Made by a program: the position numbers and the translations under genes. This document shows positions 38,465 through 62,754 of a stretch of DNA of 64,000 bases, one piece after another. The notes below the pieces were generated by a model, which saw nothing but the letters and a program-made list of their open reading frames with translations, made no database searches and was not told the origin of the DNA. The stretch comes from Marsupella aquatica. Taxonomy: Eukaryota; Plantae; Marchantiophyta. Where the stretch lies: NCBI GenBank assembly GCA_973895155.1, contig OZ316899.1:2007573-2071572 (forward strand), read 5' to 3'. The number at the start of each line of letters is the position of its first letter. Position 1 is the stretch's first letter.

Positions 38465-38789
38465 CACCGTGCCAGGAAACAGTAAAAAGGGAAACAGCAA
38501 ACAGTAAATAGTAAACAGCAAATGGATGATAATTTTTTGAATTTTTTGGGGAATTTTTGGGAATTTTTTTTGGGGGGATTTTTTTTTTGTTGGGTTTGTA
38601 TTTTTGACATTTTTTACTAGCACCCCAAGCTAGTAATAGTAGCACCTGGCGCTAGCCAAAAATGGTCGTTTTAAAAAATATTTTGAAAATTTTGAGTTTT
38701 AATGAGAAATGTTTTATATCTCATTTTTGCTCGTAACAGTAAAATTTTGCTCATAATAGGAAATCATTTTCCTGTTTCCTGGCACAGTG
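38465..38789. mobile_element. MITE-like element (325 bp) with 18-bp TIRs CACYGTGCCAGGAAACAG
   Basis: 38465-38482 and 38772-38789 are inverted repeats with 1 mismatch; AACAG-rich subtermini; contains TAGCACCTGGCGCTA at 38640-38654; no clear TSD. Confidence 0.65.
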
Positions 38790-40282: not shown

Positions 40283-43200
40283 CAGCGCCCGACACTAACC
40301 AAAAAATTCTGAATAAACCAAGAAACATATCCGTTGGTAAAGACAAAATAGTGACTATCCGTTATATTGAACGACCTATATGGAAGTTTCGGCCCCTATT
40401 ATAAGCCATTCAAGTTCTGCCTCTCCAATACAAGCCTGACTTCGCCCACAGTCAAAATTGGTTGGCTACAAAGAGTCGACTCCTCAACCTCAAGTTTGAA
40501 AACATTTATGTACACCCAATATAGATGTTTACAAGGTATGTAGACTTGCCACGCGAATGTCGTAGGAAGAAGTCCTCACAAGAGCAAGCAGGGAAGATAC
40601 AGATTTGCACAAAGTACGTGCTTGGTGATCGAAGGTTCTCATGGGTTCGAATTTGAAATTGCTTTCCAAAAGCATTTCCAGTCCGAACATTCCATTCCCC
40701 ATCCAAACTCATCTCTTCTTGTCGTGCAGACTCCATTCGCTTAGTGTGACCCACAGTGAGATTAGACCGAGGTCTTGAGTTCCTCCCATTCCGACTACCC
40801 AGCCGGACATTTGGTTCCAAAAACCTTATTGTTTCTGGGAACACATTCACATTTATCCTGAGGTCAAACAAAGATGGCGCAGATCGACTCAATCCTGTTG
40901 TTCGGGCTAAGACAAGTCCTTGCTCTTCGAGGAACGTGATTTCAGAAGGAGATAGGTTCGTACCCTTCAGAGCAGGCAAAATTTCAGGAAGAGGAGGAAG
41001 CTGATGAACACCACGATGCGGACGACTCTTATAACAGGTTTGGTTTGGGCAGAACCAAATCATTTCGGAGATCGGTTCGCCCCTAAAGAGACGATGGCCC
41101 TTCACGACAATTCCAACAACACCATTAGATGAATGGAAGCCAACCTTCTTGATACGATTTCAACACTCATCGCGATCAAAACTCCCATTGAGTGTCCCAT
41201 TACACTGGGGACCTGCTCCATACTTGGACGTCCGTCGCAGCTGCCACTGCCCCAGAGGGACATCCTTCTCGAGCACAATCGTGCGTGGAAGTGGATTCTG
41301 AAGTGAGACTGGTGCACTGAGCAGAGGTTTTGTGGATCTTGTTGTACGGGTTGTTTGAGGGGTATTGTCCAGTGAATCAGTATCACCATCTGATGTGTCC
41401 ATACCAGAGAGATTCACCACTCTTGTCATAGGATCATTAGAATTAGAGGGAATGGAGGCAAAGTCAGTTCTGTTTAGGTTTTTCCTTTTCAAACCACAAG
41501 TATTTGGTGTGGTTATGAGAACGGTGTCATGCCGATGGGAGTCTTGTGGAGAGACAGTCCCAGTTGCATGTCCCTTTCTCTTCATTGACTTGGTCACGAT
41601 ATCTCCGTTAAGGGGAGTACTTCTTTCCAAATCAAAGTCCGCTGCGTTGGAAAGAAGCATGTTGGTCGCATCTTCAAATAACCTCGGCGAACCTGCTTGA
41701 TCGGCAGAACGGAACGCCAATTCCCATATAGTTGGTCCCTTTCCTCTGTTCAACCCTTTTCGATATGGACTGTATCCCGCAACTTGAGACAAGGCTCGGT
41801 TTTGGTCCACTTTGCATGCTTCAAAAAGACCAACTTTTTTCTTTGTAGCCCAGGCTTTCATAGACGCATGCCTTGATTCTGACCCTGTACAGTTTGGAAT
41901 CAAGGCACCTTCTTCTGCGCTTTTGCTCTGCCATAGTCCGAATGCAATAATCAGTACTAGCATTGTATTACCAGCGCCCGGCGCTGGCACCGACAAGTAT
42001 TTATAACATACGTGAAATACAATTTAGATTATGATTCTGGAACTTTATGGACATGTTGGACTCAAATACGAGAAAATCGCCTCCCCATTGGTGGGCGGCG
42101 CATCAAACTGGCTAAGGCTAGGGATCTCATAGCTTTAGAACGACGACAGTGGTTTGCTAGGAGTACTGGCAGAGTCACCTCTGTGGCTGCGTTGCTGGTC
42201 TAGGAGTGATAGCTATTGGAAGAGGTCGAATGGGATACCTCGCTTTACCGGCTCTAGGGCTCTAGAAGTTGACATGATGTATGGGTCACTCACATTTTGG
42301 GCCACTAGGTTTAGTCCCCCCTTTTTTTTATTGTGATTCTGGCCTTTGCTTTTGCCGCTGGCCTCCCTGAGGGGTTGTTCTGATTTATCTATGGGGCTGT
42401 TTGCTTCCCCCCGGCCGTGGGGTTTTCGCGGTCTCACCTTTTATTATAAAAAATATTTTCCCAGGAAATACGAGAAAATCATACCAACGCCTGGCGCTAA
42501 TATAAAGTTGATGGAAATGAAAGACAAGAGAGGAGATGGATGTCATACCACTCGAATAAAATTGCCCCACTGGCGCCATCGAACAACCCACCAGGATATC
42601 CAGCTTTGTAGCATCATGAGCTTTCCAGGGACACAGTTTCCTGATTGCCACCAAACCACAATCTCTTGGGACACGCGATACGCTACCACAAACGTTGGAG
42701 CGTTTCTTAGTTTCTCCCAAAGTCTCCGATGTTCTGATTGACATTCTTCGAGTACTCCTTCCTTGGAATGCCGATGGAAAGATTGATAAAAGTGAAATGC
42801 ATCAGAGCGCTCCCTCTCCAGGTCTGGGTGTCCACCAAAAAAAAACATTCCGCACAACATTCCATCCAGCTTGTGCATTGTCCGCCATAAACCCTTGGAT
42901 GACAACCTCTTGTAATCCATTCTCCTTGCAAACCTCAATCATAACTCTCCAAGCCTTTTCGAAAGACTCAGTGTCTTCACCTTTCAACTCGCATGTGAAA
43001 ATTGTACAAAGTGCACAGAAGTAATGGTCATAGACATGCGTGCTAAAAGTAAACCAATCGGTTGTGATACACTGCATCACATCAAAACTGACCCAGGCTC
43101 CTTTGAGTCTTCCACCAGGTTGCATCTGTCTCAAAAGATCCACACTGGAACCGTGACCCTTCGTGGTCATTTTAAAGATGTGAGGCCTGTTGTCTTGACA

Positions 43201-46200
43201 TCCCTGACCCGGGAGCAAATACCTCTGGAGAAACAACAGGTTAATCTTCTTCTGCATTTGCGAGAGAAAATCAAGTTCTTCCTAACGCTCCGACAAAGAG
43301 ATGCAAACTTTTGGGGAGTGGAAAGTACCATCAGAGACTTCCATATTTCAGTTTCTTTGATATCGACCATGTTGTCAACATGTTCGCAGAGAGCTTTCAC
43401 TATGGACCCTGTAGCAGAATTCAAGATCCCAGCTGGTTTTGCCAGAGGATTGGCTTCATGATTTTTTTTAATTAAATCCTCAGCCATCTTCTCCGCACTC
43501 CTACAGAAGGTTTTTCTACTAGATGGTTATGCTCACCTATATGAATCGCCAGGCGGGACATATGACTACATGTTTCCGCATCAAGTAATACTTGCGGGTA
43601 CATATAGAACAAACGGGCAGGGCAGTACTTGACACAAAAAGGAATCTGATCACAATAATGACACACAACACCGCCCTCTTCGATAAAAGATCCGACAGCA
43701 TACTGACCACTAAGCTTTGGAGTACCCTGCCATGCCTTAGCGTTTGCCTTCTTCTTCCTTTGAAAGTACTCGCAGGACTTGTTCCGACATTCAATGAATC
43801 CCGTACAGGTAACCTTACCGAATTGCCAAAGTTTTTTCGGCTGAACGTTCGCGGTAGTTGGAAATATGCGTGTCCAAATGTAGCAATCTTTGGCATGGTC
43901 CATGTCCCTAAGCCTAGAGCCTTTAGAGAGCATCTTGTCAATGGGTGGCAATTCAAACACGACGTTCCCGTTGTACTTAGTTGGCAGACAGGAGACTTGC
44001 TCATGTCTGAAATCACCCGTTGATATGAACCTCGATAACTCGCTATGACCAGTGGATTTGAGTAACGTATCCATTGCACTCCGCCGATACACGACCTCCA
44101 ACTGGTTAGAGCTTCCTGGAGTCTCACCTTTAACGACAGCATGTTGCGGGACTTTCATTTTCAACGTAGGACTTGAAGTGTGATCCCCATCTTCACTAGA
44201 AGAAATCTCGACAACATCAAATGGAACTTGGGGGACACCGGACGGTCCTTCATGTTGTCTTACTCGGAGTGAGTACAAAATCCCCGCGTATAGATGCCAA
44301 AACCGTTCACCATCATCCACATTGAATGTTGCTGCATCTTCGATGTCATCACTGGGTTCGAGCTCTCGAACAATGGCCTCAATATCATTCATCTTCAAAT
44401 CAAATCTCCCGCAACGGTATCTCTCCCGGACCTGCTTGTACGTGTCTTCCATAGGGACGGGGATGGTCACAATATCTCTAGTCCTGAATCGGGATAGAAC
44501 GATGGACCAAGACATTGCATCGAAAACAAATAACGAGGGCTGTAATGTTTCGAGGAAGAAAAGTCTATGGTAATATGGAGCTTATATCAGTCGAACATGG
44601 GAACTTCATGTTAACAGATGCGTTTGTATAAGACATAAAACATAGTCAACATAGGATCCGTTGGCGCCATAAATGATTTTTGTCATTTTTCCCCGATAAG
44701 TCCGGATGTCAGACGCATACATAATGCCAAAAAAGGCACCACAAAAATCTTTAACAGACTCTAAGATATTGTATAGTTGGAACAATTTGAGTAGCGCTTG
44801 GCGCTAACTAAAATGTCTCAAACATAATATGCCCCAAATCTCAATATTCCATACTAGCGCCTGGCGCTAGAATACAAAAACCCTCCAGATATCCATCAAT
44901 ACTATGAAATAATTGGATTGAAATGATCAATGAAAATGTGAATTCTTTTAAAACTATGGATGAAAAATACTCGTTATCACTAGCACCGGGCGCTAGTATA
45001 GAATGCAAGTAATGTTTCCCAAAAACCTTAAAACAATAGACATTTCTTTAAATGTGGGGTTGTTTTGATGAAATTTATGTATTCGAGGCACCATTTCAGA
45101 CCTATTCTATAGCTGTTGTTTTTACTAGCGCCGGGCGCTGCCATGACAATCATCCAAATTATCTACTTCAAGGGAAGTTGTTTATAATAGCGCCAGACGC
45201 TAGTATTCCGAGTGAGGGAGGAAAACGGTCATAATGGTAACATTTAACGGTAACTTCTGAGTTCCGTGTGTGTTATGCTTCTTCTACCGCTTGATTTAGC
45301 TAATTAAGTTCTCCGCATAGATACATTGGAATCCGCCAAACTTACGAACTTCTCGCTTTAATCGAAGAGTTCCGCTGAACTCCATCCTCCTTCTAGAATA
45401 TATTACACGTTGAGAGTTGATTAGAGTTCCATAATTTCATTGTACGATAGTTTGTACGCTTCTGGAAGGAAGACGATGGAGGGATTCTCCTCTTCATCCA
45501 GAGGGTACAGTGTTGTTCCTGACCAAGAGCGAGCTTATTCTGAATCCTCGCAGTCTTCGTTTACTGGTTCAGTTTATACACGTCATGTAACTCGTTCCAC
45601 AAAGTTGTTGCCTCCTACTTTTGTTAGCGCTGTTTTGGTTCCTAAATCTCTACGTAGAAAGATGGAGAACCTTGACATGATTGCGATCCAAGATGTTTCG
45701 GACTGCGCACTCGCGAAGACTGATCTCATCTCAAAACATGTCATGTGTTTTGGAAAGGATTCTCGTGGATTTGACAAGGAGCCGCCTCAAATGCCTCTAT
45801 GCCGATTGGTTCATATGAAGGTGGTTCGTACTTTGCGGAAAGATAGCTCTTCCATCGAGAAGCTGAAAGACTCGTTTTGCAGTATGGGTTACAATTCATC
45901 CATAGGAATGCGTTTCTATGTGCAGCCAACGGATGAGAATGGAATTGTTCTGACCTGTACCCAGGAAATTCGTGAGTCATGGGATCCAATTTGGCAATTG
46001 GAGAACGAGAAGTTTGAGGCTGAATGCGAGGCCGATCCAGGTTTTCTTGTGTTGAAGGATAAGATGTTCTCTGTCTTCGATGGAAATCACAGGTTGTACT
46101 CATGGACGCTTGTTACCAAGGAGAATCCTGACAATCCAAAATACCATCCTCGAGTGCTCTGCACAATATTTAAGGGAGACAAGGGATCTCTTATTGAAAT

Positions 46201-47815
46201 TGAGGCAGCTATGCACACCGTGAATCAGTAAGTTATCGTTCTTTTCCGGTACCTTCTTTGAATCTTGTGAGTGTTCTATTTAAGAGCGCTCGGCGCTGGT
46301 TATAGATAAATTGTACTTTGACTCTAACTCGCTGCATCTCTTTGTGTAGGCTTGGCCAAGCAGTTGTTGAGCCATCCTGGATTCTCGATGCAGATAGAAT
46401 CAAACGAATTCTGGCGCATGACCTTGAGTATTACAGTAAACTGATTGACCCGGCTAATTTCAAGAAGTTTGAGAGCATTCGGCTAAAGACTCGGAAGGGG
46501 TCATGGTATACGAAGAAGATGCCACAGGAAGCTCTTGTTTACATTCTATGTGAGAATAAGATAAAGTCCTATTCTCACCAATTCAAGCTTGACATGGAGG
46601 CAGCCGAGGCCCAAGGGAGTCCCTGGTCGGTGGACGAGATTTCCAAACGCCATGCGGCCATGATGAAGGACGCAACCAAAGACTGGGCAGTGAAGTCCTC
46701 AAAAATTACGCCCTTGTTAAGTCCTGAATTTGAAGATTTTCTTAGTACATGTGCAGAAATGTATGTTGTCATAGAGAGAAACAAGAGAGAGAAGAAGCCT
46801 GATGCCGTCGTATGTACAATGGACCGCGCCCAATTGTTCACTGCTGTTTCTGCCCTAGACCCAAAGTTGCGGAGCATCCTACTTGTGGCACATTGCAATC
46901 CTGAGCTGCGGAGACAGTTTTTCCACCCGGCAAGTGTTAACGATGACCCAGTCAAACAATGGTGTCATACTTGGATCACTTGGAATAGTGTAGAGGGAAT
47001 TGTTGTCGGCATGTTACATTCATGTCTGCGTGAAGTAGAGCAAACGATGCCTGCGACTAGATTGGAAGAGTGGAATTGTGGTTCGTTTGATGTTCTTGTT
47101 CAGTTTGTTACAAATGAATTCAAGAGATATGGTGATTCTGTGAAGAGTAAGTTCTTTCACACTATGTGGCCTTCAAAGTGTCCAGACAAAGAAGACTATA
47201 CCCAGAAAAACCAGAAGCGGCTAAAAGGTATCTTTATAGGTTCTACATGCACATGGAGGTAACCAAATCTGATTACTTCTGGGCATATCCTGCAGCTTTC
47301 ATGAAGTGGATTACAATAAGTGAGATGACACCATAGCTGATTTGTACTCCATGTACCCAGCGGAGGGCATATTTCCTCCAAGACCTACGACAGAATGGGA
47401 GAGAACTCACTGCCCCTGGTATCTAGATACAGATAGATGGGATTCTCCTTTTGATCAAAGGGAGAAAGATGCATTCCATAAGCTTTCAAAGTCCCACATA
47501 CCAGCAAAAATTGTGTCCGACATGAAGCAGGGCCTGCTAGACGATGTAGACAAGTCTGCCACTGACTTGCAAAGTATCTGTGAAACGACTATTGTTCATG
47601 TGGACCGAAGTCGCAAACCTCGAGCGAAAGCAAAAGCGGAGTTAGCAGCACCAAGCGAGTCAACGAAATCTGGGAGGAAAAGTGAGTATAGTGTTCCCTA
47701 GTTTGGCCAGTGCTTGGCGCTGGCTTGAACTGTCATGCGAATTCACATTTCTTTCTACATTCCTAAGCCTTTGTTGTAACCTAAGTGATTTGCATTTGGT
47801 TAGCGCCTGGCGCTA
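40283..47815. promoter_or_regulatory. Dispersed palindrome family A, TAGCGCC-N-GGCGCTA (11 copies in cassette A)
   Basis: Copies start at 40283, 41971, 42485, 44792, 44854, 44979, 45126, 45188, 46284, 47706, 47801; 44854-44870 and 47801-47815 are perfect. Regulatory role is inferred. Confidence 0.8.
40400..44515 (-). pseudogene. Mutator-like transposase A: Ubl/PB1-like, WRKY/GCM-like Zn domain, DDE core, Cys-rich domain, SWIM
   Basis: KVTCTGFIECRNKSC..CHYC..CPAR..HIGEHNH; WVSFD (D1); GFMADN (D2); DAFH; NCTGSESRHAS (E); FPACSCEDF (SWIM). Split by frameshifts and an intron; left end approximate. Confidence 0.8.
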
Positions 47816-49243
47816 GCTTGTTTGAATACTCAGGATTTACTTGTTCTAACTAGGACCTATTGGTAATTTAGGAGGGAGGAAGTCTAATACTGCGGAAACA
47901 GGAGATACTAAAGTGGATGCTACACCTGAAGTTTTTGAGGCAAACACCAGAGCTCGATCGGACCCCATTACTCCTGTCGACAAGGGGAAGGTAATAGTTC
48001 CGGTTGACGCCACAAGTACTAGGAAGAAACGAAAGAGAGCTATCGAAGGTGGACCTTCTTCAAGGGAGAGTGTTGCAGCATCTGGTGTCCAACGTGAAGT
48101 TGGAAACTTCAAAACTAGAGTGTCTCGTCATGCCATGGTTGAGACAAGCATATCCGAATTTTTTGACTCCACTTTCAACAAGGGGGAAAAACCTGAATGG
48201 GTTAGTAATGTGGAGAAGTGGGGGAAGGATCTCGTTAAGTCGGGATATAAAGAGAAGGGTGTTGTGCGGGGAGGAAAAGAAAGATCGTATGGAGTGGATG
48301 CGGGTTTCATTTACCTACCAACCGGGTTCAAACCAACGATCATAGATAAGAAGGTTCCTAAATGGAACACTCCAGATCACTCCATGGCTAGATCTTTTTT
48401 CAAGTCCATGGATCCATTTCTATCAGATGATGGATTCCTTGCAATTCTACACAATGGGGAGTATGATCCCATGTCTCAAGTCATTGTTGCCTATCAGGAA
48501 TCGAGAAAATTTCAGTGCATATGCACACATAATGTTGTAATGTCTGTCCCGATGTACGCGGCAAAGACAGACCGTCAGGTAATCTTGTACTCTTAACTAT
48601 GTCGCATTTTGAAATATAACTCATTTAACCTGGAGTTGCCAACTGACACTTGGGATTGCTTTTCGCAGATGTTTACCCTCAGGCTGGACATATTGGTCGA
48701 ATTAATGGGAAATGCAAAATTTCCAAAGACCCTAAATTCCGTCCACTCTCCATCAGTGAGGACCCCTCGGTCACCAATTTGATCGGACTCCCTTCTCTCA
48801 AATCCGATCCATTCCCGCAAATGGAGTTTTCTGGAAATGCTCGCCTATCTATTGGGTTTATGCAATCTGTCATTGAGCTTGTCACCCGACCTCGTGATAT
48901 TTTTATGGATTGGACCGCTGGGGCTGGAAGCTCCTTCATTGCTGGAGACTTCTCGGGGAGGTTTGTGCTCAAGATAGAACATAGAAAAGAATTTATTGAA
49001 ACCACTTTGAAGGTTTTCATGGATTTGTTGTCTCCCAAAGAGATTGCGGTTTTACCTCCACCTATTCCTATTGCCGACAGAAAGAAGCGAGATAAGCTTC
49101 GGTCGGTACTCAATTTTGATTCTGATGATGAGTCCAGTGAAGGTGGAGATGGAGAGGAACAAGGTGCAGGGGACTCGGAGGAGGAAAAGGAAGAACCTCG
49201 TCGATCTCCTGATGAAACCGATAGTGATGACTCTTCCGAGTAA
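45476..49243 (+). pseudogene. ParB-like / N4-N6 DNA methyltransferase-like fusion gene, copy A (4 exons, frameshifted)
   Basis: MPLCRLVHMKVVRTL..LKDSF..GY..FDGNHRL (ParB/Srx-like; DGNHR at 46079); C-terminal VDAGFIYLPTG..W..LSDDGFLAILH and RLSIGFMQSVIELVTRPRDIFMDWTAGAGSSFIAGDFSGRFVLKIE; GT-AG introns 46228-46349, from 47682 (acceptor uncertain) and 48579-48668. Confidence 0.8.
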
Positions 49244-49575
49244 TGTTCATAAACTCGTAAGCTTCTTTCTCCATTCCCGTCAATTTATAACATTTCTGTG
49301 TTGTTTTGGAGAAAGGCACATAACTTCCTAGATTTTGTTTGATCAGGTCAGAGTGGAATGCGAGGAGATGTTTAAAATTGCAAAGGAGGGTTGCTAGACA
49401 CAACATAGAAACACCAGAAAAACCTTTTGTTCTTCCCTCCTATGCAAAGAAAGCCGCAAGGAAAGCCGAGAGTACAAGGACGCTTTGCTGAGAAAACAAA
49501 GGTCTTCGGTTACGAAGGGGTGTTGACAGGAAGTTCATTAAACATCCTTGTGTTGATGACTTCTCCCGCAACCAG

Positions 49576-51642: not shown

Positions 51643-54600
51643 ACTAGCAATATCGCTAGTATAGAATTGCCTCTACATTTCAGATCAATCTTTGATGTGT
51701 TCATCTTAGATAATCTTAGAGTATTACTGCAACAACTTCAGGGAACACTTCCCGCCCAAGAACACATCCTAAGTTGATCAGACTAGCGATCTTGCTAGCA
51801 AAAAATTGGCGTCATTTTAATGATCAAACCGTGAACTCTATACATACTTGTAGATAGGTTAACACGGCTGGAAGTCGGATGTTTCTGTCAGGATGTAGCA
51901 GACTTCCTAAGACTAGAGAGATTGCTAGCCATAAACAACAAACTCAAACACCATAAAAGTTACCATTATGGACCTCGCTAACATTATGATTCACTCGGTG
52001 AAAACAGATTGATATTTGTGAAACCACAAACTCGAGTAATCCATCCCACCACCCTATAATTAACATCTCCAATAAACGAGTAGTCCCCTATCTGTAACGG
52101 AATTAAACTCCTCACTTCCCCAACAGTCAGAATCGGCTGTTTCACAAGGTCATCCTTCTCCAGGTTGAGTGAAAACTTGTTTAAATACACCCACAGCAGA
52201 TGTTTACAAGACATGTATGGTTTCCCTCGTGTATGCCTCTTATAAAAGTCTTCACAAGAACACGAAGGGAAACAACAGATTTGCACCCAATATGTGTGCG
52301 GAACTTGTGAATCAGTCTTGTGAGTGGCGATCAAGTATCTCCAACCCCATCCATTTCCGGTAGTTACCTTCTCATTTCCGACAACTCTCATGTATTCTTG
52401 TGTAGCGGAAACGATGCGCTTGAGCAACTCTGGAGTATTGCTGAAACGTTATCGTGCACCCTTACCATTTCGGGTTTTCAACCGACGTTCCACATTAGTT
52501 AGATCAATTCGTTTGGGGAATGAGTTAACATCAATTCGTAAGTTGACCCGATTGGGGGACGGGAACTCTCCAACTTGATTTGCATCCACATAGGAGAGTC
52601 CACTGATCTGGAATCCTAATCCCAACAGAAACTCTATCTCGGGATGGGAGAGGCAAGTCCCACGCTGAACCTTGAGCGACTCGGGTGGGGGGGGGGTAAT
52701 TGAGCTAGAGTTCTGCGTCCTCGGCTCTTGTGACACTTATTGTTAGGACAGAAGTACAACAACTGGCGATGTGGAGACAATAATCGCAACCCGTGAATGG
52801 CGACTCCAACAATTCCCCCTTGCGCGGACTTACATCTAGTCTCCTTGATGAGATTTCTACATTCATCTCTTCCAAAAACGCTTCGGTCAACCGACCCGTT
52901 GCAAACAGGTCCAGCACCTCTACCGCTCCGCCTGAGATGCCAGGTCCCATAAGGAACATCAACCTCTCGGATGGAAGGGATCCTTTGGGGGGCATCCCGA
53001 TGGTCATCCCCGACATCACACGAAGGTTGAGTCCCCATTTTCTCGGTATCATTGATATTACGACTTGCATCATCACCATCGTCATCTGAAATATGGATAA
53101 CTCCAGCAGAACAACCTCCGACAGGGGTTGCCAAAGTTGTATTATTTGCTATTTCTGGGTCCGCAGAAGTCTCCGAAACATTGACGAAGCAAAATTCAGA
53201 ATAGAGATTACGCCTTTTTAGTCCTGAAGGAGAAGTTGTTGTGCGTGACACCTTGTCACGTCTGTGGGAGTCATTCGCGTGGATTACAGCTGAAGCTTTC
53301 CCTTTCCTCTTCGTGGATGTTGTTCGGAGATCGCCATGTAATGGAACTGTTCTATAGAATTCATACTTAGCTGAAGACTCAAGCAAAAGATTTGTTGCCT
53401 TTTTGTAAGCATCCATGGATCCCATAGCATCGGCGTTCCTATATGCTAATTCAAAAATGGTCGGCCCCTGGCCTCTGTGAACACCTTCACTGTAGGCAGT
53501 AAAAGCAGCAATTTGCCCCGCAGCACGATTCTGGTCCACCTCACATGCTTCAATCAATCCCACTAGTTTCTTCATTTGGCAGGATCGCATGGATGCATGG
53601 ACTGATTCCGCTCCAATACAATTTGGCATCAAGGCTGACTCCATTGCAGTTTGCGTCTGTGAAAAAGCAGTCCCCAGTCAGACCTGATATGCTAGCAAAA
53701 ACAATGACGTCAAAGAGAAATGAAATTGGACACTTACAACGCGGATGAAGTTCCCCCACTGCCTCCACCTCACGACCCACCAAGATAACCATCCTTGGAG
53801 AGACTTCAATTTCCCAACATAGCAGTTTCCTTCCTTCCACCAACGATGGATTTCGTCAGCAACACGGTAGGCCTGAACATATGTTGGTGCTGTTCTCAGC
53901 CTTTCCCACAGTTTATAGTGCTCTCGATGGCGATCTTCCCGAATACCCTCCAATGTGTGACGACGAAGAGATTGAGCAAAGTGAAAGGCGTCACTGTGCT
54001 CCTTCTGTGGGTGACGGACACCTCCAAAAAAACATTTCAAATGGCGATCCATCCAGCCTCGACATTATCGGCAATAAATCCTCCAATGAGTGGGTCATGC
54101 ACGTCATGATCAGAGGCAACTAATCATATATCTCCATGCTGTTTCAAGAGATAAGGAGTCCTCCGCACGGAGCTCACAAGTGAAGATGGTACAAAGGGAC
54201 CTGTAATTATGGTCGTACACATGGGCGCTGAAAGTCAGCCACCCAGTGCTTATTCTCCGCATTACATCAGAACTGACCCATGCTCCTTCCAGCTCACCTC
54301 CACTCTTCATCTGCCTGAGAATATTGACACCAGAACCTGGGCCATTTGTACTCATTTTGAAGACATGAGCCCTATCGGTCTTGCTCCCCTGGCCAGGGAA
54401 AAGGTACCTCTGAACGTAAGGAAAATTATTCCGTGCTTGCATCTCACGAAGAGAATCCAACTCACCTTGTTTTGGGTTATCCGTTTTCACGCTCTGGAAT
54501 ATGGCCTGGAATTTCTCAACAGTGGACACAACCTTCATCGATTCCCATATCTCTCTCTCTTCTTCTTTTGATAGTTCTGAAGAAGACTCTGGATGCAAAA

Positions 54601-57600
54601 GAGAAACCAGGTTTCCTATAGACTTGTTAAGAACACGCCCTGGCGTACACACGGGATTCGCTTTATGAACACCAAAAACTATCTCCTCCGCCTGCTTTTT
54701 TGCCAATCAAGATTTCCCTTTCCAAACAACGTGGTCATGGAAACCCATGTGAACAGCCAATCGAGACATGTTTCGCAACATTTGACTCAAGAGACAGCTT
54801 AGGATAGACGTACAAAAGTTTAGCCGGACATTCACGGATGCAGAGAGGCCTCTCCTCACAGAATCCGCACACCAACCCTCCTTCCTCCACAAGCTCACCA
54901 AGATGAAACGGCTCTGTAAATTGTCCTTTCCTCGGAAGGAAGAGTCATTTTTTGAAGCGGTGTGCTTCAACTTTCTACAGACCAGATTTTGACATTCAAG
55001 TACACCGGCACATCTGACTTTTGACACAGACCAGTGATTGCAAGGTTTGAGATTAGCTGAAGTTGTGAGAAGTATCGTCCATGGGTAGCCATCATTATCC
55101 CTATCCATGTCCTGAAGACCATATCCTCGACGAAATTGACCTTCGACCGGAGGAAGCTCAAAAATGCAATTTCCGTTGTATGAAGTGGGCAAAGTCTGCA
55201 CTTGAATCTCCTTCCAATCGTTTCCCCTGTGGAAATATGCCCAACTCGCTTGACCCAGTAATATTGAGGAAGGCATCATATGCACTAACTCGATAAAGAA
55301 CTGGATGAGATTGAAACTCGTTTTGAATCATTGCTTCAAAAACGGATTTCTCAAAAGACTTTGTCGACACAGAAGAGAGATCCCAACCCACACTCTCAGG
55401 GGAGATGTCGATAATTTCTGGTACTGCAGGTGACGGGCGAGTCGGGGATTCTGGATCGGAAACATTGATATGTGCAATGTCATCCTTACATGAGACTAGC
55501 TCTATAGCTAAACCACACTTCAGGTCCCAAGCTCTCTCTGGCAATATTCCTGAACCATTATCCGACACCTCATGACTTCTGGATCCATTCCGAGAGTAAA
55601 GAACGAACAACTTCCAGATGAAATCATCTTTCAAAAGCCCAAACCTCGATGAGAGAAAAGACTCCTTGACAGAGATAATAGTATTCTCCGGAACATCTAG
55701 AACAACAACATCACCCGTCGTCTTTCTCTCGATCACAACCTTCGATCCCAATGAAGACATGCTGACAGTTTTGGACATTACAGTCTACAACAATCCTCAA
55801 ATGTGAGATACTTTACTCCCTTCTTTCTCCAAATACATATGAGGAAACGTGCTTGTGTAGGTGTTGGACTCAACGTATTTATTTAATAAATGCCTCTTAT
55901 TCCCGTTATCTGACCATTATTTTGTCTTATATGACACTATTTATGGAATGATAAAGCTAGCAAGATTGCTAGCTCAATGAACCAAGTAAAATGGTTCAAA
56001 ACCTTACAAAACACCCTTCACGAGTTCATGGATTTAGTGATCGATTTTTGGCTAGCGATGTCGCTAGCAAAAACAGTTTCTCATAAGAGGCCATTATGAC
56101 CAATTATATCCATTGGAATTGGTCAACGGGTACCTATATGTCAACGGTACGGTACAGTACCGGACACCTGTCTCTTTGTCATTAGATACTTTTCTTTCAG
56201 TTGTGAGTTTGGTGGTTCGTATTTCCGGAAGTACATGTATACCTGACGGTGTCTGAAAAATGATTGTGAGGAGAGTCGTATAGAATATCTGTATCTCTTT
56301 TCACGACCGAGCGCTGCATTCAGGTGAAAGCAACAGACGAGGGTACGATTCTGTCTTTGACTGGAAGATCAATTCTCGGGTTTCTTTATGTTCGCAAAGC
56401 GTGTCGCCCTCGACCTTGACCTGTTCATACCCTTATCACTTCACGGACCCGCTGATGGAGCCATTGTCTTCACCCGAGAGCTTGTCATCAGTAGGATCGT
56501 TCAAGTCAGTCGAGTCAAGCCAAAGGGAGACAAGGTCTACAGTGAACAAGAAGGCGCTCCAGGCGGGATTGAAAACACCGAGGAGGCCCAAGATGGTGAA
56601 CCAAGTAGATGTTGTGAATCCTACGTTTCAACCTGGAGCTTCATAACCCTATTCTGTTTCATCAATCGCCATCTTTTCCCTTTTGGAAATGACGAATTTG
56701 GATTCCCCCTCGCTCCTCCGAGGATTCCCCTTTGCAGAATGCAAAACATGCAGATCGTTTGGACCTTGCAAACAAACTTGACTGCGATTGAGACACTCAA
56801 GAATGAATTCCGGACGCAGGGATACATCAAGGATGCGCCTCAATTTTACGTACAAATGACCGGCGAAGATGGCCTTGTCTAGATGTGCGACGATGTGATT
56901 CGAGAGTCGTGGAATGACATGTGGATTCTTCAGAATGAAGAATTCAAGAGGGAATGTGATTCTCACAAAGCTTTCAAAATTTTGAAAGACAAAATGTTCT
57001 ATGTTTTCGATGGAAATCATCGTCTGTACTCATGGATGCAGCTTGCGGACGAGAATCCCCATGATGTCAAATATCATCCTCGAGTTGTTTGCCGAATTTT
57101 CAAGGGTGACAAGAACTCATTCGTTCAGATTGAGTCGGCGATGCATGCGCTGAATAGGTTTGTTTCTTTTCCTTCAAGCTGTGAATTGTATATAAAATTC
57201 TTTCAGTTCCTCTTGTTAGCGATCTCGCTGACCTGTTTCTTTTGTTCAGGTTGACTCAATGTCACGTTGAGAATTCTTGGGTCCTTGAAGCAGAGAGAGT
57301 CCAGAAGGTGCTCAGTAATGACCTTTCTATATACAAAGATATCATCGATGCAGACAACTACAAACTTTTCCAGCAGAAGATGGCAAATATCAGGAAACCG
57401 GCTTGGTATTCGAAGAACATGACACTCGATGCCTGCACGTACATTCTGTCTGCTGCTAATATTGCAGCGCAGATGGAAGATTTGAAGAAGAAGTTCCAGT
57501 TGAAAGAAGCGCAAGGAGAACCTCTTTCAAAAGCTACGCAAGACATGGCAGTGAAAGATATGATGAAGGAGCAACTAGCAGATTGGAATGTGAAGGTGCC

Positions 57601-59427
57601 AAAGATTGGACCTCTCCTGAATCCTGAGTTTGGTGACTTTTCCAGAAGTGTGTTGAGATGCACAACTACTGCAAACATGAGAGGAAGGAGGCCCAACGAA
57701 CAGACAATAAAGGAAGGGGTAATGTGTCATGTGGTCTTGATCGTGCGAGGCTATTTACGGGTGTCTCATCGTTGACTCCGCAGCTCAGATGTGTACTCCT
57801 CGAGGCACAATGCAGACCTGAGCTTCGCAAGAAGTACTTCCACCCTGGTCAATTCTCGGACAGCGAAACAAAACTTTGGCTTCACCGATGGGCTGTATGG
57901 GAGCAGGTTGAGTCAATTTGTTCTTCGCTCATGTTTGAGATTATTTCAGAGATGATCCCAACTGTTCCAGATGCAAGGATCCTTACTTCATCTGAGAAGA
58001 CAAAGCCATCGCTGATCCTTGACATAGAGGAGGACTTTGAAGATTTCCAAACGAGAGTGAAATCTCGTTTTTTCAGACAGATTTGGCCACCAAAGTCGGG
58101 TGAGAAGATTGACATCTCACTTTTTTGGAGGAGGGCGAAGAGATATACATATCGTTTTTTTGTAGATAGAGAAGTTGCTGACAAAACATATTGGTGGTCC
58201 TATCCTGCTTGCTTCTCGCCTTGGATAGCAGGAGTGAAAGAGGATCCAACCTCCGTTAAATATGGAGAGTACTCGATGTACCCATGTGAGGGAGTGGAGG
58301 CTCCAAGGAAGATGAGTGAGTGGGAAGTCCTTCACTGTCCATGGTTTTTAGAATCAGACAAATGGGCAGTGACATTTGACACAGCAGAGAAGGCAACATT
58401 TCATATGATAAATCGAGGCTTGATACCAGAGTCGTACATTACAGAGTCCAAATTAGCTCCTGCAGAAGCCGAGGCTGGCGGATGTGAGGCAATGGAGAAA
58501 GTTGTTCTTGGTGTAGCTGCCATTGTCGACCGGAGTAGATCAAGGAGACCTTGGAAGGTGCCGGTGAAGGACACGTCCAAAGATGGATCAGTCTTGTCTG
58601 GGAAGCAAAGTAAGTCTTTTTCTCCTCTTTTTTTCATACCTCATTTGGAGTAATTTTGTCTCAGTCACCTGTCTAACATTAACATGTTTTTCAGAGAAGA
58701 GAAAGGCTGCAGCCTCTGGGAGTTTGAAGAGTGGGGCGGATGATGGAGAAGAACCCAAGTCTTCTGATGTTGAGGTCACAACAAAATCTGTTGTGGACCT
58801 AGGTTCAATCAAGCGTTTAAAGAGGAAGCGCAATGTCCAAATTCTCTCCGACTCGGATGAGGAGGAAGCATGCGTCGCGCAAGGAGTAGCACAAATGTGT
58901 GGTCTTAAGAAGGACGGTGAGAGGCATTTCTTGGCAAAGAGCAATCTCACGGAAACTGCAAACTCAATTAGCCAGAGGAAAGTAAGACCTCCCTGGATGG
59001 GCAATGCGGATCAGTGGTTGTCTGGAATGAGCAAATCGAGCGAACACCCAAACACCGTGATGATCAACGGAAAACATTATGCTGGAATTGGTGCTCACTT
59101 GGGTTTCATATTCCTTCCCACGGGTCATCAAACAAGCATCACAGACCGGGAGGTCCCGAAGTGGAATGTTTGGAGTGAGAAATTACCATATTATTTCTTT
59201 GGAGTCATGCGTTCGATGCTTGCCGATGATGGTTTTGTCGCAGTTCTTCACAGCTCTGACTATAACCATATGAGGCAAATTTTTTCTACCGTCGAGCAGA
59301 AGAACAAATTTAAACATGTCCGACAGTATTCGGTTTTGCTTTCATCTCCTTTGCATCAGGCAGATATGGACATCGAGGTAAGATATCCGCAATAGTTTTT
59401 GTGCAAGTTTTGCTAGCGAGCTCGCTA
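51643..59427. promoter_or_regulatory. Dispersed palindrome family B, (C)TAGCRA-NN-TYGCTA(G) (7 copies in cassette B)
   Basis: Copies start at 51643, 51783, 51913, 55955, 56051, 57215, 59414; 55955-55974, 56051-56068 and 59414-59427 have perfect arms. Regulatory role is inferred. Confidence 0.8.
51984..55778 (-). pseudogene. Mutator-like transposase B (paralogue of A)
   Basis: Ubl-like N-terminus; KVRCAGVLECQNLVC, SRLAVHMGFHDH; WVSSD (D1); GFIADN (D2); DAFH; NCIGAESVHAS (E); SWIM CSCEDF..CKHLLWVY. Confidence 0.82.
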
Positions 59428-59977
59428 ATCAAAAGTGCACATTTCTTACATATTCTCATTTTCAATTCAGGTGGTTACTCTCATTATGGATGCCTTCTGC
59501 AAGGTGGAATTCTTGGCAAAAGTCCCAAAACATACAGGATATGTTCCAATGACTTCCTCGGAGGATGCCCGCCATAAATTGATGTTGAGTGTTTGCTACC
59601 CAAAAATTGATCCCAGTCCCAAGGCGGCTTTTGCAGGTTCCAATAGATTGTCAGTTGGGTTCATGCAAGCTATAATGGAGATCCTTACTTTGCCAAAGGA
59701 CATTGTCATTGACTGGACTGTTGGAGATGGAAGTGCTTTTGCCGCTGGGGAATACGCTAGGAGATTTGTTATGGGTGTTGAAGATCGAGACATTCTTCAT
59801 CTGTGTGCGCAAAAAACTTTGGCAAGTGTGTTGGATAGACATGCCCAGAAGTTGAAAGGGGCCGCAGACCCAAAAAACGATGATCCCAATGATGAAGGGT
59901 CGGATTATGAGTTCACCATCCCAGGAGATGATCAGGGAGGACCTTCAGACGAGAAGGATGAATTCGACCTAGAGTAA
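56401..59977 (+). pseudogene. ParB-like / N4-N6 DNA methyltransferase-like fusion gene, copy B (4 exons, disrupted)
   Basis: IPLCRMQNMQIV..LKNEF..GY..FDGNHRL (57009); LGFIFLPTG..W..LADDGFVAVLH; RLSVGFMQAIMEILTLPKDIVIDWTVGDGSAFAAGEYARRFVMGVE; introns 57158-57249, 58610-58694, 59378-59470 at the same positions as copy A; true start may be slightly upstream. Confidence 0.8.
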
Positions 59978-61692
59978 AGCACTTGGCCTTTGATGTAGAA
60001 CTCCCTATTTGGCGTTTTTATTTTGTTTGTAGAATTTTTGGATATGTAGTATTGATCCGATTCTGGTGATTTCTTCAGTGATAGGCGTTTGGATTGGTTT
60101 TTGGAGGAGAGATTCCGTCTTCGGAAAGAAATCAAGGATCATTTTCTTGTGACCCCTGAGAAGGGATTTGCGCTTCCATGCTATGCTGAAAAAACTGCAA
60201 AGGAGGTTGATGAAGCGCCCGTCGTTTTGACTTGGGAGGGGAAAGGTCTGCGGTCAGTGAGGGGTGTTTGGAAAGCCCTTTACTGCCCTCAGTTCATAGA
60301 TGATGAGGCTGGGACTGTAGCACAATATGTTGACGATTCGGCTGAGAAGACTGATAGGGAGTCGAGTAGCGATCCTAGTAATTCCTCAGATGATTTGGAA
60401 TCAGAGGATTCTCAATGACTCATGGTCAATTTCAGATGCAATCTCATTCCAAAAGATATTTGTCATACCAAAGTTTTATTAAAGATGGATTGTGAAAGGT
60501 TTTTTGACCTGGTTTTGTTCATAATGATGATGCCTTTTCATTCAGTTCAGTGTAGTGAAGATCTCAATGTTTGCATTTGTGAATATTTAAGTATCTGCAT
60601 TTTTGTTTTCCGTAACTGTTTCACAATATATATCGACAATCTTACTACCCTGAAGTTACGCACAAACTTGCCTCGCTAGCCTGCTGTCCTCGCTAGCAAA
60701 ACTCCTGTTTGCTCGCTTAATAGAATACCTCGACTGTTCCTATTGATGGTGTACTGCCAATCGATAGGAGAGTTCAAGAAATGTTTGGGCGAGTTGACTT
60801 TAAGGACAGTAACATTCCCAATGAAACTTATACGAGGGCAGTGCGTCGGGGTCCTTCTGAGAGATACATTCAATTGCGTGGTCTTGGATTCAAGAAAAAT
60901 TGGAGGAGAGAAGCGGCAAGAGTGGAGGATGATTGCAATTCTGAAAGCTAGATGCAATCACTTATTTGTTGTTCCTCCCATTTTTCACGAAGAACGGCAT
61001 CACATTGTTCAGTTTGGTGATCACTTTAAGCTAGAGCCGAGCGCTGCTTAAGCTCTTTTGATGTTTCGGGATGGAGTCGCCCTTGGCTTCGTTGTTAGGG
61101 TTTTTCCCGGATGTTGTCTTCAGGAATTCCATAGTTTTTCCTGCAGTTGTTGGCTAGCGCCCAGCGTTGCTTTTGTTTTACTGGAAATCCTCAGCCGGGG
61201 TCGACCGTGGCTTCTGTATATCAGATTTCTAGGCCTGCAGGTTTTAACTTATATGTGCATTTTTTGGACCTGCGCCGAACGCGTTATGTACTTTGCGATT
61301 ATATATGGCAGTTTTATTTTTTCCCTGCGCATTTTGACATATATTGGTCTCGGATTTTGTTTATCTCAATTGTGAGACGGTTTTATTTGTTGTAAATACA
61401 TGATTCCGTCTAGTCCAATTTCCTTTCACGCGAATTTAATCGTCTTGATTTCTATACCAGTAGTTTGAAATGCATCTTTCGTCCACTTTTTTCATGATCA
61501 CTGTTCACCGCTACCCAAACACTGTTCATTGGTAACAGTTTCTTTTTGCTGATAACAGTAATTGTTTGCTGTTATTGTTATCTGTTTGCTGTCGTTTGTA
61601 AATTCCCCCTGCGACCTCCACCTCAAAGGTATGACCTGGATACTTTGTATGCTTTCTTCAGCCAAAGATGTCCCCAATGTGCTTTACACCAC

Positions 61693-62754
61693 AGTCGTAG
61701 AACTTGACTACCTTAACACTTAGCTCTGGCGTCGCTGACTTTGACGCCAAGCTCCCTTACGGTCCAAGCCCGGATAGGCCATCCGGGGAGGACTTAGCAT
61801 GGGGAGAGTTGTGGGCAATGGGAAATGGCACTGGCAAAGGCAAGGCGCCAAGCTGGTGACACACACTAAGGACTTAGGCTAGTTGAGAGCTAGTTGGGTC
61901 AAGGGGAAACGGGCCGGACTCAAGGTCGACCGTCCGGACCCCCGGACGGACTTTGGGTTCTGAGGGCTTGAGTGAGAGCTCCTCTTGGGCCCAAAGGCCA
62001 ATGGAGTTGACGCCATGGGCAACGGACGCTTGGGGGGGTCTGGGGACAACATGGATTCTTGAGGTTTGCGGATGTTAGCTCGCCCGCATGCCAAATCCTG
62101 TTGAACAGCAGCCAAGCCGTGTTCAGTCTCCCAAGGGAGCTTGCATTGGGGAGGCAAGGGCAAGTAGGCATGGAGGTTGAGTTTAAAGGGTGCTTGGCCC
62201 CTAGACCATAAGTGGGGCAAGAACCGGGAGTTGGTTGCTAGAGTCGGGGCCATTCTGGTCCCGCGCGTGTTGGGACAAGCTTGAAACAAGCTTTAGGACA
62301 AGTTACGCTATTGGGCCATGAGCATGTCCTGGGGTCAGGGCGGTCAGTTGGTGATGGATAGGTACAAGGGGGAACCCGGGCTGCGCTCAAGGAAGGAGTT
62401 GTTCTGGACGAATAGTGAGCGTGGGTTCTGGTTTCGGCTTATGGCATCGGGAGGACCTATTGCTAACCTATTTACCAATGTCTGTTGAGCTTGAGTTAGG
62501 ATGCTAGACTTGGTGAGTTCTAGATCTTGAAGGGTTACTTACCAAGGCGCTTGGTTGCTTGTGCAGATAGTGAGGACCGTTGAGTAGCGGTCGTGTTGGA
62601 GAGCAAGTGCGACTTCGTATGGGAGCGGCCACTGGTGGTGCAAGGGGCACTAGGTTGCTTGCTCAAGGTATTCCGTGGAGGCGTTTGGGCACCAGGGGCA
62701 CTTAGGCGTGGGTGTTGGGATTGGTGAGGGCGCTGGGTGGCAAGGTCCACCACT
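61693..62754 (+). mobile_element. Solo LTR (internally deleted) of the AGT...ACT gypsy family
   Basis: Colinear with 25295-25620 and about 29620-30307; AGTCG...CCACT ends flanked by CCAC (61689-61692, 62755-62758). Confidence 0.82.

Follow-up and report, generated by a model that had tools for sequence, protein, structure and literature searches.

Proteins that pair a ParB-like domain with a DNA methylase domain have so far been mentioned briefly as transposon products, for algal elements only, and their function there is still without tests. In Ectocarpus, the element Sola1-1_Ec32 carries on the strand opposite its transposase the gene of an accessory protein of 1104 amino acids with a ParB domain and an N4/N6 methyltransferase (MTase) domain, for which binding and modification of the element that encodes it were suggested, with no account given of its catalytic motif (PMC12477816). 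In the Plavaka elements of Bostrychia moritziana, the accessory gene PAG3 encodes a ParB-like N-terminus and PAG2 an N6-adenine methylase domain. Inverted-repeat arrays adjoin the ParB-domain accessory genes of these red-algal elements, and homologues are said to occur in Chondrus Mutator elements (bioRxiv 10.1101/2025.02.11.637652). Associations of ParB with methylases have likewise been described from phages and plasmids, as has a chlorophyte-type Dam with an N-terminal ParB HTH (PMC4738411). Furthermore, DUF3723 (PF12520) is known as an accessory gene of fungal Starship transposons (PMC9156397).

The locus described here is a land-plant version of the ParB and methylase cargo already published for algal transposons. 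The same architecture is now found on probable Mutator-like elements (MULEs) of land plants, both in the genome from which the analysed 64,000-nucleotide stretch of DNA (the window) was taken and in the liverwort Riccia, and relatives of the cargo protein are annotated in Adiantum ferns. Within the window, the gene at 45476-49243 on the plus strand (copy A) is probably the decayed cargo (accessory) gene of an autonomous Mutator-like transposon and not a host gene, and its product would be a ParB/Srx and methylase-derived protein that acts on its own element.

Copy A consists of four exons, from an ATG at 45476 to a TAA that ends at 49243, and comprises 1128 codons with three single-base gaps entered as X; once these gaps are marked, the frame contains no further stop. 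The pieces are joined in frame by three GT..AG introns, all features lying on the plus strand. Exon 1 (45476-46227) encodes a low-complexity N-terminus followed by a ParB/Srx-like domain (about 45722-46227), which includes a ParB-like signature in the string PLCRL (45794-45808) and a DGxHR box in the string DGNHR (46079-46093). Intron 1 (46228-46349; GTAAGT..TAG, phase 2) precedes exon 2 (46350-47681), a conserved middle region of unknown fold that is homologous to Riccia proteins. Beyond intron 2 (47682-47853; GTGAGT..TAG, phase 1), exon 3 (47854-48578) encodes a basic linker and the first half of a beta-class MTase-like domain, with the strand and motif-IV-equivalent loop VDAGFIYLPTG (48294-48326; YLPT at 48312-48323), VPKWN (48354-48368) and DDGFLAILH (48426-48452). 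Intron 3 (48579-48668; GTAATC..CAG, phase 0) leads to exon 4 (48669-49243), which encodes the second half of this domain, including motif I (DWTAGAGSS, 48908-48934) and motif II (..KIE in VLKIE, 48965-48979), and then an acidic tail and the stop. The preliminary description had quoted such strings from copy A, and FLPT from copy B, and all of them were located where it had placed them. In each of four public runs, one contig lacks intron 3 and shows a joint from 48574 to 48667 with two substituted letters. An acceptor at 48666/48667, which would have spared the third frameshift, was rejected because the spliced contig joins 48578 to 48669; it is also contradicted by an extra base after 48692 in other copies. 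A candidate intron at 47238-47333 was rejected as well, since copy B codes through it and other copies carry an extra base on each side.

Frameshifts had been suspected at about 47225, 47325 and 48700, and they are real. In contigs of other family copies from four public runs, one extra base is present at each site (just after 47218, after 47322/47323 and after 48692). Relative to these copies, the reading frame of exon 2 changes from 1 to 0 to 2 across single-base gaps after 47218 and 47323, exon 4 has a single-base gap after 48692, and in copy B the coding sequence continues uninterrupted across the first two sites. Judged from these alignments, copy A appears to be a lightly decayed gene with three single-base deletions, which as it stands cannot make the full protein. 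The 40 differences of copy A from the other copies that had the best support, a small and selected sample, comprised 13 synonymous, 20 non-synonymous and 7 non-coding ones. The second copy of the cargo gene in the window (copy B; 56658-59977, plus strand) has 32-51% amino acid identity to copy A. A stop at 56880-56882 interrupts its reading frame, which changes near 57640-57700, and both copies in the window are thus broken.

Upstream of copy A, a divergent partner gene occupies 40416-44515 on the minus strand in several pieces, collinear with the copy B unit and with a Riccia locus (L003). Its assignment to the MULE-type transposases is based on a language-model search and on motifs read by eye. 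In the Atlas search, the DDE-core region at 42802-43257 (minus strand) gave a score of 0.93 with 175 shared features, and the top matches were all MULE (PF10551). A C..C..HxH finger within 43472-44515 and a SWIM-like CxC remnant with a CxC..CxH pattern at 40506-41105, both on the minus strand, were read by eye. Pfam returned no match for the minus-strand (transposase) pieces, and Rfam gave nothing over the window at the gathering threshold. No convincing terminal inverted repeats or 9- to 11-bp target-site duplication were found around either unit, and the element ends are not defined in the window. The pair of transposase and cargo gene is conserved in the liverwort Riccia sorocarpa. The preliminary description contained none of this transposon context, neither the cargo status and the divergent transposase nor the high copy number and the family-specific palindromes.

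The N-terminus of the cargo protein had been read as ParB/Srx-like from its signature, which the exon 1 model and the fold searches support. The AF2 model of 45722-46228 had a pLDDT of 94.2 and a pTM of 0.88, and the top 35 PDB matches in Foldseek were all ParB, Noc, KorB, PadC, Srx or SbnI. Superposition of the ParB/Srx-domain model with VIA gave a Z of 8.2 and 2.8-2.9 Å over about 98 residues, and the matches in the AFDB clusters and the Atlas were ParB_N. Within the DGxHR box, the residues G, N and H are nearly invariant across 67 homologues. Pfam ParB_N (PF02195) matched neither the window nor any of these 67 family members, and weak matches were obtained to the ParB-clan relatives DUF1015 (5 members, best E 0.0014) and DndB (3 members, best E 0.028). 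Sequence searches of the PDB with two ParB-domain profiles yielded chance matches only. The language-model search with exon 1 placed DUF3723 clusters nearest (score 0.96, 189 shared features), with a query recognition value below the reliability mark; Pfam PF12520 matched none of the window pieces, Riccia proteins and family members searched. On the strength of the model, the N-terminal domain is confidently predicted to adopt the ParB/Srx fold of the DGxHR type. The box reads DGNHR and not the GERRxRA CTP-binding box of canonical partition ParB, and the unit contains no ParA-like gene.

Each element family has its own palindrome of about 15-22 bp, with an AGCG..CGCT core in common. The A-type palindrome was matched 13 times in the window, where 0.77 matches would be expected. 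Five of them (TAGCGCCNGGCGCTA) lie at 44792-45202 between the two divergent genes, and others were found at 38640, 40283, 41972 and 42485, in intron 1 of copy A (46284-46298) and, as an exact copy, in intron 2 (47801-47815). Likewise, the copy B intron at 59378-59470 contains a B-type palindrome. The palindromes cluster in the divergent promoter region, within introns of the two genes and in the flanking DNA. The two genes, a MULE-type transposase and a cargo gene of about 1130 codons, diverge in transcription from this shared region, and we propose that the cargo protein might bind the palindromes of its family as a dimer, through its ParB-like module and the region behind it. Such binding could then translate into an action on the element itself, which might consist in regulating its two promoters, protecting it from silencing or marking it.

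The palindromes could be bound by the transposase just as well as by the cargo protein. It is possible, if somewhat doubtful, that they are recognised by the MULE transposase or a host factor and that the target of the cargo protein lies elsewhere, for example in chromatin or the host silencing machinery. Transposases commonly bind repeated subterminal motifs, and palindromes are indeed present in the flanks and in the introns of the transposase gene. In addition, the ParB-like domain belongs to the DGxHR type of Srx, DndB and SbnI and not to the GERRxRA type of CTP clamp that binds parS. However, the densest arrays are found beside the cargo gene in the shared promoter region and not at the ends, and Plavaka, which belongs to another superfamily, is reported to combine inverted-repeat arrays with ParB-domain cargo in the same way (bioRxiv 10.1101/2025.02.11.637652).

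The preliminary description had also claimed a beta-class order for the C-terminal half of the protein, and this order is borne out, as VDAGFIYLPTG precedes DWTAGAGSS in copy A and the corresponding motifs are arranged likewise in copy B and in Riccia. The two MTase halves of copy A matched the Riccia protein P0162 in pairwise comparison (E 3e-5 and 2e-8). The Riccia sorocarpa paralogues P0165 (31.7 bits) and P0171 (27.0 bits; profile positions 16-217) exceeded the gathering cut-off of PF01555 (N6_N4_Mtase; 26.7 bits), and seven other Riccia paralogues scored below it (13.8-26.6 bits). The five plus-strand pieces of the window itself had no Pfam match at E<=1, so that neither domain was found in this way, nor did Pfam match P0030, P0027 and P0035 of Riccia at full length. 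The family profile matched M1.HpyAVI at E 2e-4, with the G-x-G and the motif II Glu aligned. The fold was modelled on P0162, which is 22-30% identical to the window's protein, and the model is of moderate quality (pLDDT 60.8; about 50-65 in the motif I half). It matched CcrM with a Foldseek E of 5.9e-9 and a VIA Z of 12.8. VIA Z values for MboIIA, PvuII and RsrI were 12.5, 12.0 and 11.1 over 178-190 residues, and the range across MboIIA, BceJIV, PvuII, HpyAVI, RsrI and the rotifer N4CMT was 10.8-12.5. Structures of METTL14 and MTA9 were also among the fold-search matches. By these alignments and models, the C-terminal domain is homologous to beta-class DNA amino-methyltransferases and is predicted to share their shape.

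SAM motif I, D(W/F)xxGxG(S/A), and the terminal Glu of the next strand (motif II) are kept in copy A, copy B and Riccia, and align to DPFMGSGTT and IGIE of M1.HpyAVI. The place of the catalytic DPPY, in contrast to these kept motifs, is taken by YLPT in copy A, FLPT in copy B (59111-59122), YLPT in P0009 and D(L/M)(P/S)(S/T) in 18 Riccia paralogues. The proposed correspondence of YLPT and FLPT to DPPY is supported by alignment, by the place of the loop at the end of the first strand and by alignment offsets, and is an equivalence of this kind rather than one of superposed active sites. The survey of homologues recovered the canonical DPPY in none of 20, so that no intact homologue retaining it was found. 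The suggestion that the change predates the decay of copy A is supported, because the replacement is family-wide. The change came about in two steps: the liverwort Riccia also lacks the first Pro and the aromatic residue, and the Asp was lost in the window's lineage specifically.

A reasonable reading of this motif is that the protein is a pseudo-methyltransferase, which might act as a reader or a shield as the preliminary description had put it. The methylase-derived domain would then most likely lack canonical N6-adenine or N4-cytosine transfer, and it may have become a module that binds SAM or DNA, or may work through an altered active site. Conservation of the loop (L/M)P(S/T)G across about 25% overall identity argues against a simply dead site and could equally mean an altered one. 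We consider it unlikely that the domain is a still-active methyltransferase with a non-canonical loop, which would methylate its own element, for example at or near the palindromes, or another substrate in a form of self-marking. Such activity would agree with the retention of both SAM-binding motifs, with the conservation of the loop between such distant lineages, with the Asp of 18/18 Riccia paralogues and with the fact that a multi-copy element has kept the domain both across bryophytes and in the window's lineage. The first Pro may also be dispensable, because rRNA adenine methylases work with N(L/I)PY. However, the window's lineage has Y or F in place of the Asp, and we know of no active amino-methyltransferase with Ser or Thr instead of the stacking aromatic residue. 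Degenerate paralogues such as METTL14 (EPPL) are typically non-catalytic.

That the gene belongs to a host or domesticated family, as might be read from the Riccia and Adiantum annotations of its members as ordinary "hypothetical proteins," is highly improbable and was rejected on the grounds of copy number and transposase linkage: 480-1295 contigs per public run match a 4.1-kb stretch at 90-99% identity, the window holds two diverged units (both broken) and Riccia has dozens of paralogues, with the MULE-type transposase gene as a constant neighbor.

Returning to the reading as transposon cargo, we tentatively suggest a wider interpretation. The ParB/Srx domain and a methylase-derived domain no longer capable of canonical catalysis may form a self-targeting module of land-plant Mutator elements that reads a co-evolving palindrome, with a common core and family-specific arms, and controls or shields its own element. 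It would then be a eukaryotic transposon analogue of plasmid ParB/parS, and a remote kinship with the DUF3723 cargo of Starships is conceivable. The family is large (412 matches, found with the exon 1 ParB/Srx-like domain as the basis), its catalytic motif is replaced throughout and its SAM-binding motifs are kept. As the gene is accompanied in every element family by a palindrome array particular to that family, it offers a directly testable candidate pair of protein and site. If the protein does mark or shield its own element, a plant transposon would be facing host silencing by a new means, and a methyltransferase fold would once more have given rise to a binding module. Copy A itself is a broken family member, and its value is that of an example and not of an active gene.

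Compared with known proteins, the C-terminal domain has the fold, permuted order, motif I G-x-G and motif II acid of beta-class PF01555 enzymes (CcrM, M.RsrI, M.PvuII, M.MboIIA and rotifer N4CMT), as well as the (V/A)D-x-hydrophobic strand that runs into the loop of motif IV. Unlike these enzymes, the window's lineage carries (Y/F)LPT in the place of (D/N/S)PP(Y/F/W), and Riccia carries D(L/M)(P/S)(S/T) there; the window pieces have no Pfam score. In METTL14 and ciliate MTA9, too, the amino-MTase fold is permuted and the DPPW-type motif degenerate; both are kept for nucleic-acid binding and act as partners of an active paralogue. The cargo protein resembles them in fold and degenerate motif; however, this element encodes no active partner. 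With DUF3723 it has in common the status of conserved cargo of a large transposon and a ParB-like predicted fold.

As in the phage, plasmid and chlorophyte cases (PMC4738411), modules of the ParB family and of adenine methylases are combined here in mobile elements and transferred to eukaryotes. However, the chlorophyte and chytrid family joins an M.EcoKI/TaqI-like group 2 (Dam-type) methylase to a ParB HTH, whereas here a beta-class domain follows an N-terminal ParB/Srx domain. PAG2 and PAG3 of Plavaka are similarly transposon cargo with ParB-like and methylase domains and inverted-repeat arrays nearby. In contrast to the present protein, which unites the ParB and methylase-like domains, ParB is joined there to a 2OG oxygenase and the methylase to SET, in separate genes. 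The accessory protein of Sola1-1_Ec32, likened here by its description (PMC12477816), lies in a Sola1 element of a brown alga and not in a MULE of a land plant, but it likewise combines ParB-like and MTase or MTase-like domains in one protein of about 1100 amino acids, encoded opposite the transposase.

The window is eukaryotic in character: its introns are of the GT..AG kind and about 90-170 nt long, and it contains LTR-type repeats. Direct repeats at 25295-26253, 29145-30221 and 61693-62668 share 82-97% identity, the first two lying 3524 nt apart and the third 32-36 kb off, and look like the LTRs of a retrotransposon family. The cargo gene designated copy A runs on the plus strand from an ATG at 45476 to a TAA at 49241-49243 and comprises four exons (45476-46227, 46350-47681, 47854-48578, and 48669-49243) separated by introns 1 to 3 (46228-46349, 47682-47853, and 48579-48668, respectively; all plus strand). 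The strings quoted for this gene in the preliminary description were all located in the sequence at the coordinates reported for them. The reading frame changes twice in exon 2 and once in exon 4. When contigs from four public runs were compared with 45300-49400, other copies carried one extra base after 47218, 47322/47323, and 48692, and these sites match exactly the three breaks that had been proposed. With an X placed at each break, copy A forms one 1128-codon frame with zero further stops and is therefore a family copy with light, recent decay. An intron at 47238-47333 was considered and rejected, as the homologous stretch in copy B, a diverged second cargo gene (56658-59977, plus strand), is continuous coding sequence. 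All four runs include a single contig from which intron 3 is precisely absent, 48578 being joined to 48669 with two substitutions. Because the type of these runs is a guess, such contigs could derive either from spliced RNA or from a retro-copied family member without the intron.

A small conserved open reading frame (ORF) with the motifs LP.YA..A and FIDDEA..SS.EE lies 3' of each cargo gene (49345-49560 and 60089-60418). This ORF may be an additional last exon of the cargo gene, because several gene models in Riccia have it fused onto the methylase-like end. The copy A stop codon TAA sits within a donor-like GA/GTAATG.

The 4.1-kb stretch of copy A belongs to an abundant repeat family. Between 480 and 1295 short contigs per run covered it at 90-99% identity in the four public runs; their word depths sum to thousands, and the differences are chiefly transitions. 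Copy B shares 32-51% amino acid identity with copy A and is broken too: an in-frame stop codon interrupts it at 56880-56882, and its frame changes near 57640-57700. Six-frame comparison revealed two collinear units, A (approximately 40416-49560) and B (approximately 52091-60304), each with a large minus-strand gene diverging from the plus-strand gene. Motifs read by eye in the minus-strand gene include an N-terminal C..C..HxH finger, a DDE-like core, and a CxC..CxH (SWIM-like) end. Its pieces had no Pfam matches; in a protein-language-model search, the core piece at 42802-43257 (minus strand) matched MULE-transposase clusters only (score 0.93, 175 shared features). The SWIM-like end is complete in the copy B transposase (51984-52427, minus strand; CSC...CKH). 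The CxH part has been lost from the corresponding end in copy A (40506-41105, minus strand), so this transposase gene looks decayed as well. The same divergent gene pair was found in a Logan contig (L002) and at a chromosome locus of the liverwort Riccia sorocarpa (L003). Terminal inverted repeats and target-site duplications were searched for around both units and none were found, so the element ends are undefined in the window. Copy A is probably best regarded as a decayed example of a cargo gene from a high-copy Mutator-like transposon.

A profile of exon 1 and a few close relatives retrieved 412 proteins from an exhaustive library, 191 of them at an E value of <=1e-10, and the annotated homologues came from R. 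sorocarpa and Adiantum ferns. The AlphaFold model of 45722-46228, built with 67 homologues, was confident (pLDDT 94.2, pTM 0.88). Foldseek's top 35 PDB matches for this model were, without exception, ParB, Noc, KorB, PadC, sulfiredoxin, or SbnI (E from 7e-3, TM of about 0.42), and VIA-align aligned about 98 of the 169 residues at 2.8-2.9 A, with a Z score of 8.2. Likewise, ParB/sulfiredoxin entries were returned for this domain by AlphaFold-DB clusters and the ESM Atlas. The designation ParB/Srx-like is therefore correct as a fold and superfamily call; these results do not show it to be a partition-type ParB. The signature box reads DGNHR, with G, N, and H nearly invariant among the 67 homologues. 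It has the DGxHR form seen in Srx, DndB, and SbnI-type proteins, as opposed to the GERRxRA box with which partition ParB binds CTP. In Pfam, the exon 1 family had no match to ParB_N, and a few members weakly matched the clan relatives DUF1015 and DndB. The nearest clusters to the exon 1 region (45440-46231) in the language-model search were fungal DUF3723 (score 0.96, 189 shared features), a link with no supporting Pfam match. To judge from this similarity, fungal DUF3723 and exon 1 may represent two linked transposon cargo families; DUF3723 has been described as a conserved Starship accessory gene of unexplained function (PMC9156397).

ParB-like stretches were also seen in two other contexts. 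The 1005-aa protein A0A388MEC1, named "DNA methylase N-4/N-6 domain-containing protein," has a ParB-like fold at residues 320-447 (AlphaFold DB cluster match) and is a further ParB plus methylase fusion, outside the annotated members of the cargo family. In the 658-aa protein P0148, retrotransposon gag/Ty3 capsid domains are joined to a ParB-like stretch (363-457); this is probably a chimeric gene model spanning nested elements.

For the C-terminal domain, the window's own pieces of the cargo gene had no Pfam match. Exon 3 matched the Riccia protein P0030 (E = 4.6e-7). Another Riccia protein, P0162 (273 aa), was matched by both halves of the domain in the window, with pairwise E values of 3e-5 and 2e-8. 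A profile search recovered 27 proteins with this domain, all but one from Riccia, and several are named "DNA methylase N-4/N-6 domain-containing" in UniRef. Two Riccia homologues scored above the PF01555 threshold (P0165, 31.7 bits; P0171, 27.0 bits, profile positions 16-217), and others fell just under it, matching on the motif I end. Among PDB sequences, the family profile matched M1.HpyAVI (E = 2e-4), with the motif I G-x-G and the motif II Glu aligned. The AlphaFold model of P0162 was moderate (pLDDT 60.8; 70-87 in the first half and 50-66 in the motif I half), and its fold matches beta-class enzymes, best of all CcrM (Foldseek E = 5.9e-9). VIA Z scores were highest for CcrM (12.8), MboIIA (12.5), BceJIV (12.2), PvuII (12.0), HpyAVI (11.7), RsrI (11.1), and the rotifer N4CMT (10.8), followed by MT-A70 enzymes. 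The homologue matches and the fold of P0162, a protein 22-30% identical to that of the window, therefore support the proposed beta-class methyltransferase-like C terminus.

The catalytic motif IV of this domain has been replaced. In the alignment, the region reads VDAGFIYLPTG in copy A, GAHLGFIFLPTG in copy B, and ADCLYLD(L/M)(P/S)(S/T)G in Riccia, and in the P0162 model, residues 26-30 (CLYLD) form a strand that leads into the loop LPTG. This arrangement parallels VDLIF-x-DPPYN, the strand and loop of beta-class enzymes. The VIA alignment of the model to M.RsrI opens by pairing model residue 24 with chain residue 59, and the M.RsrI DPPY presumably occupies residues 65-68; D30-L-P-T33 of P0162 would thus fall on DPPY if the alignment is ungapped there. 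Canonical (D/N/S)PP(Y/F/W) was present in 0 of 20 homologues with the motif IV region. Across the whole family, the motif has lost its first Pro and its aromatic residue; the Asp persists in Riccia and has disappeared from the lineage of the window (copy A, copy B, and the protein P0009). The family-wide losses mean that the change precedes the decay of copy A, as had been argued, and it is much older than was then assumed. The (L/M)P(S/T)G loop shows conservation of its own, and motifs I and II are retained; these features are as compatible with a binding module as with an altered active site. The suggestion that the cargo protein may be a pseudo-methyltransferase, acting as reader or shield, is plausible.

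Both units carry overrepresented palindromes. For TAGCGCCNGGCGCTA, the window has 13 matches versus 0.77 expected. Unit A and its left flank account for 11 of them: the region separating the divergent genes has five (44792-45202), cargo gene introns 1 and 2 hold one apiece, gaps that separate conserved blocks of the transposase gene have two, and a final two lie further to the left. Unit B has GCTAGCGANNTCGCTAGC instead, with seven copies versus 0.06 expected, at equivalent places. At the Riccia locus, six ATTCCGGCGAG..TCGCCGGAAT palindromes lie between the divergent genes (L003:8573-9250), and a second palindrome, CCCAGCGGACCCCGCTGGAC, has eight copies across both flanks (L003:4255, 14354-14965). 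In the Logan contig, a further type is represented by two copies at the corresponding intergenic position. An AGCG..CGCT core is common to all of these palindromes. This pairing of protein and site offers the strongest lead to a mechanism, with either the cargo protein or the transposase as the candidate binder.

Comparable cargo proteins have recently been noticed elsewhere. Sola1-1_Ec32 of Ectocarpus encodes, opposite its transposase, a 1104-aa protein with ParB-like and N4/N6 DNA methyltransferase domains (PMC12477816). The cargo of Bostrychia Plavaka elements includes PAG2 (N6-adenine methylase plus SET) and PAG3 (ParB plus 2OG oxygenase); inverted-repeat arrays adjoin PAG3, and homologues are reported from Mutator elements of Chondrus (bioRxiv 10.1101/2025.02.11.637652). 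Eukaryotic ParB-associated adenine methylases of phage origin were described by Iyer et al. (PMC4738411). No description of ParB/methylase cargo in land-plant MULEs was found in the literature searched. As the probable cargo of a high-copy Mutator-like transposon, the gene described here is a land-plant variant of this recently noticed class of transposon accessory proteins.
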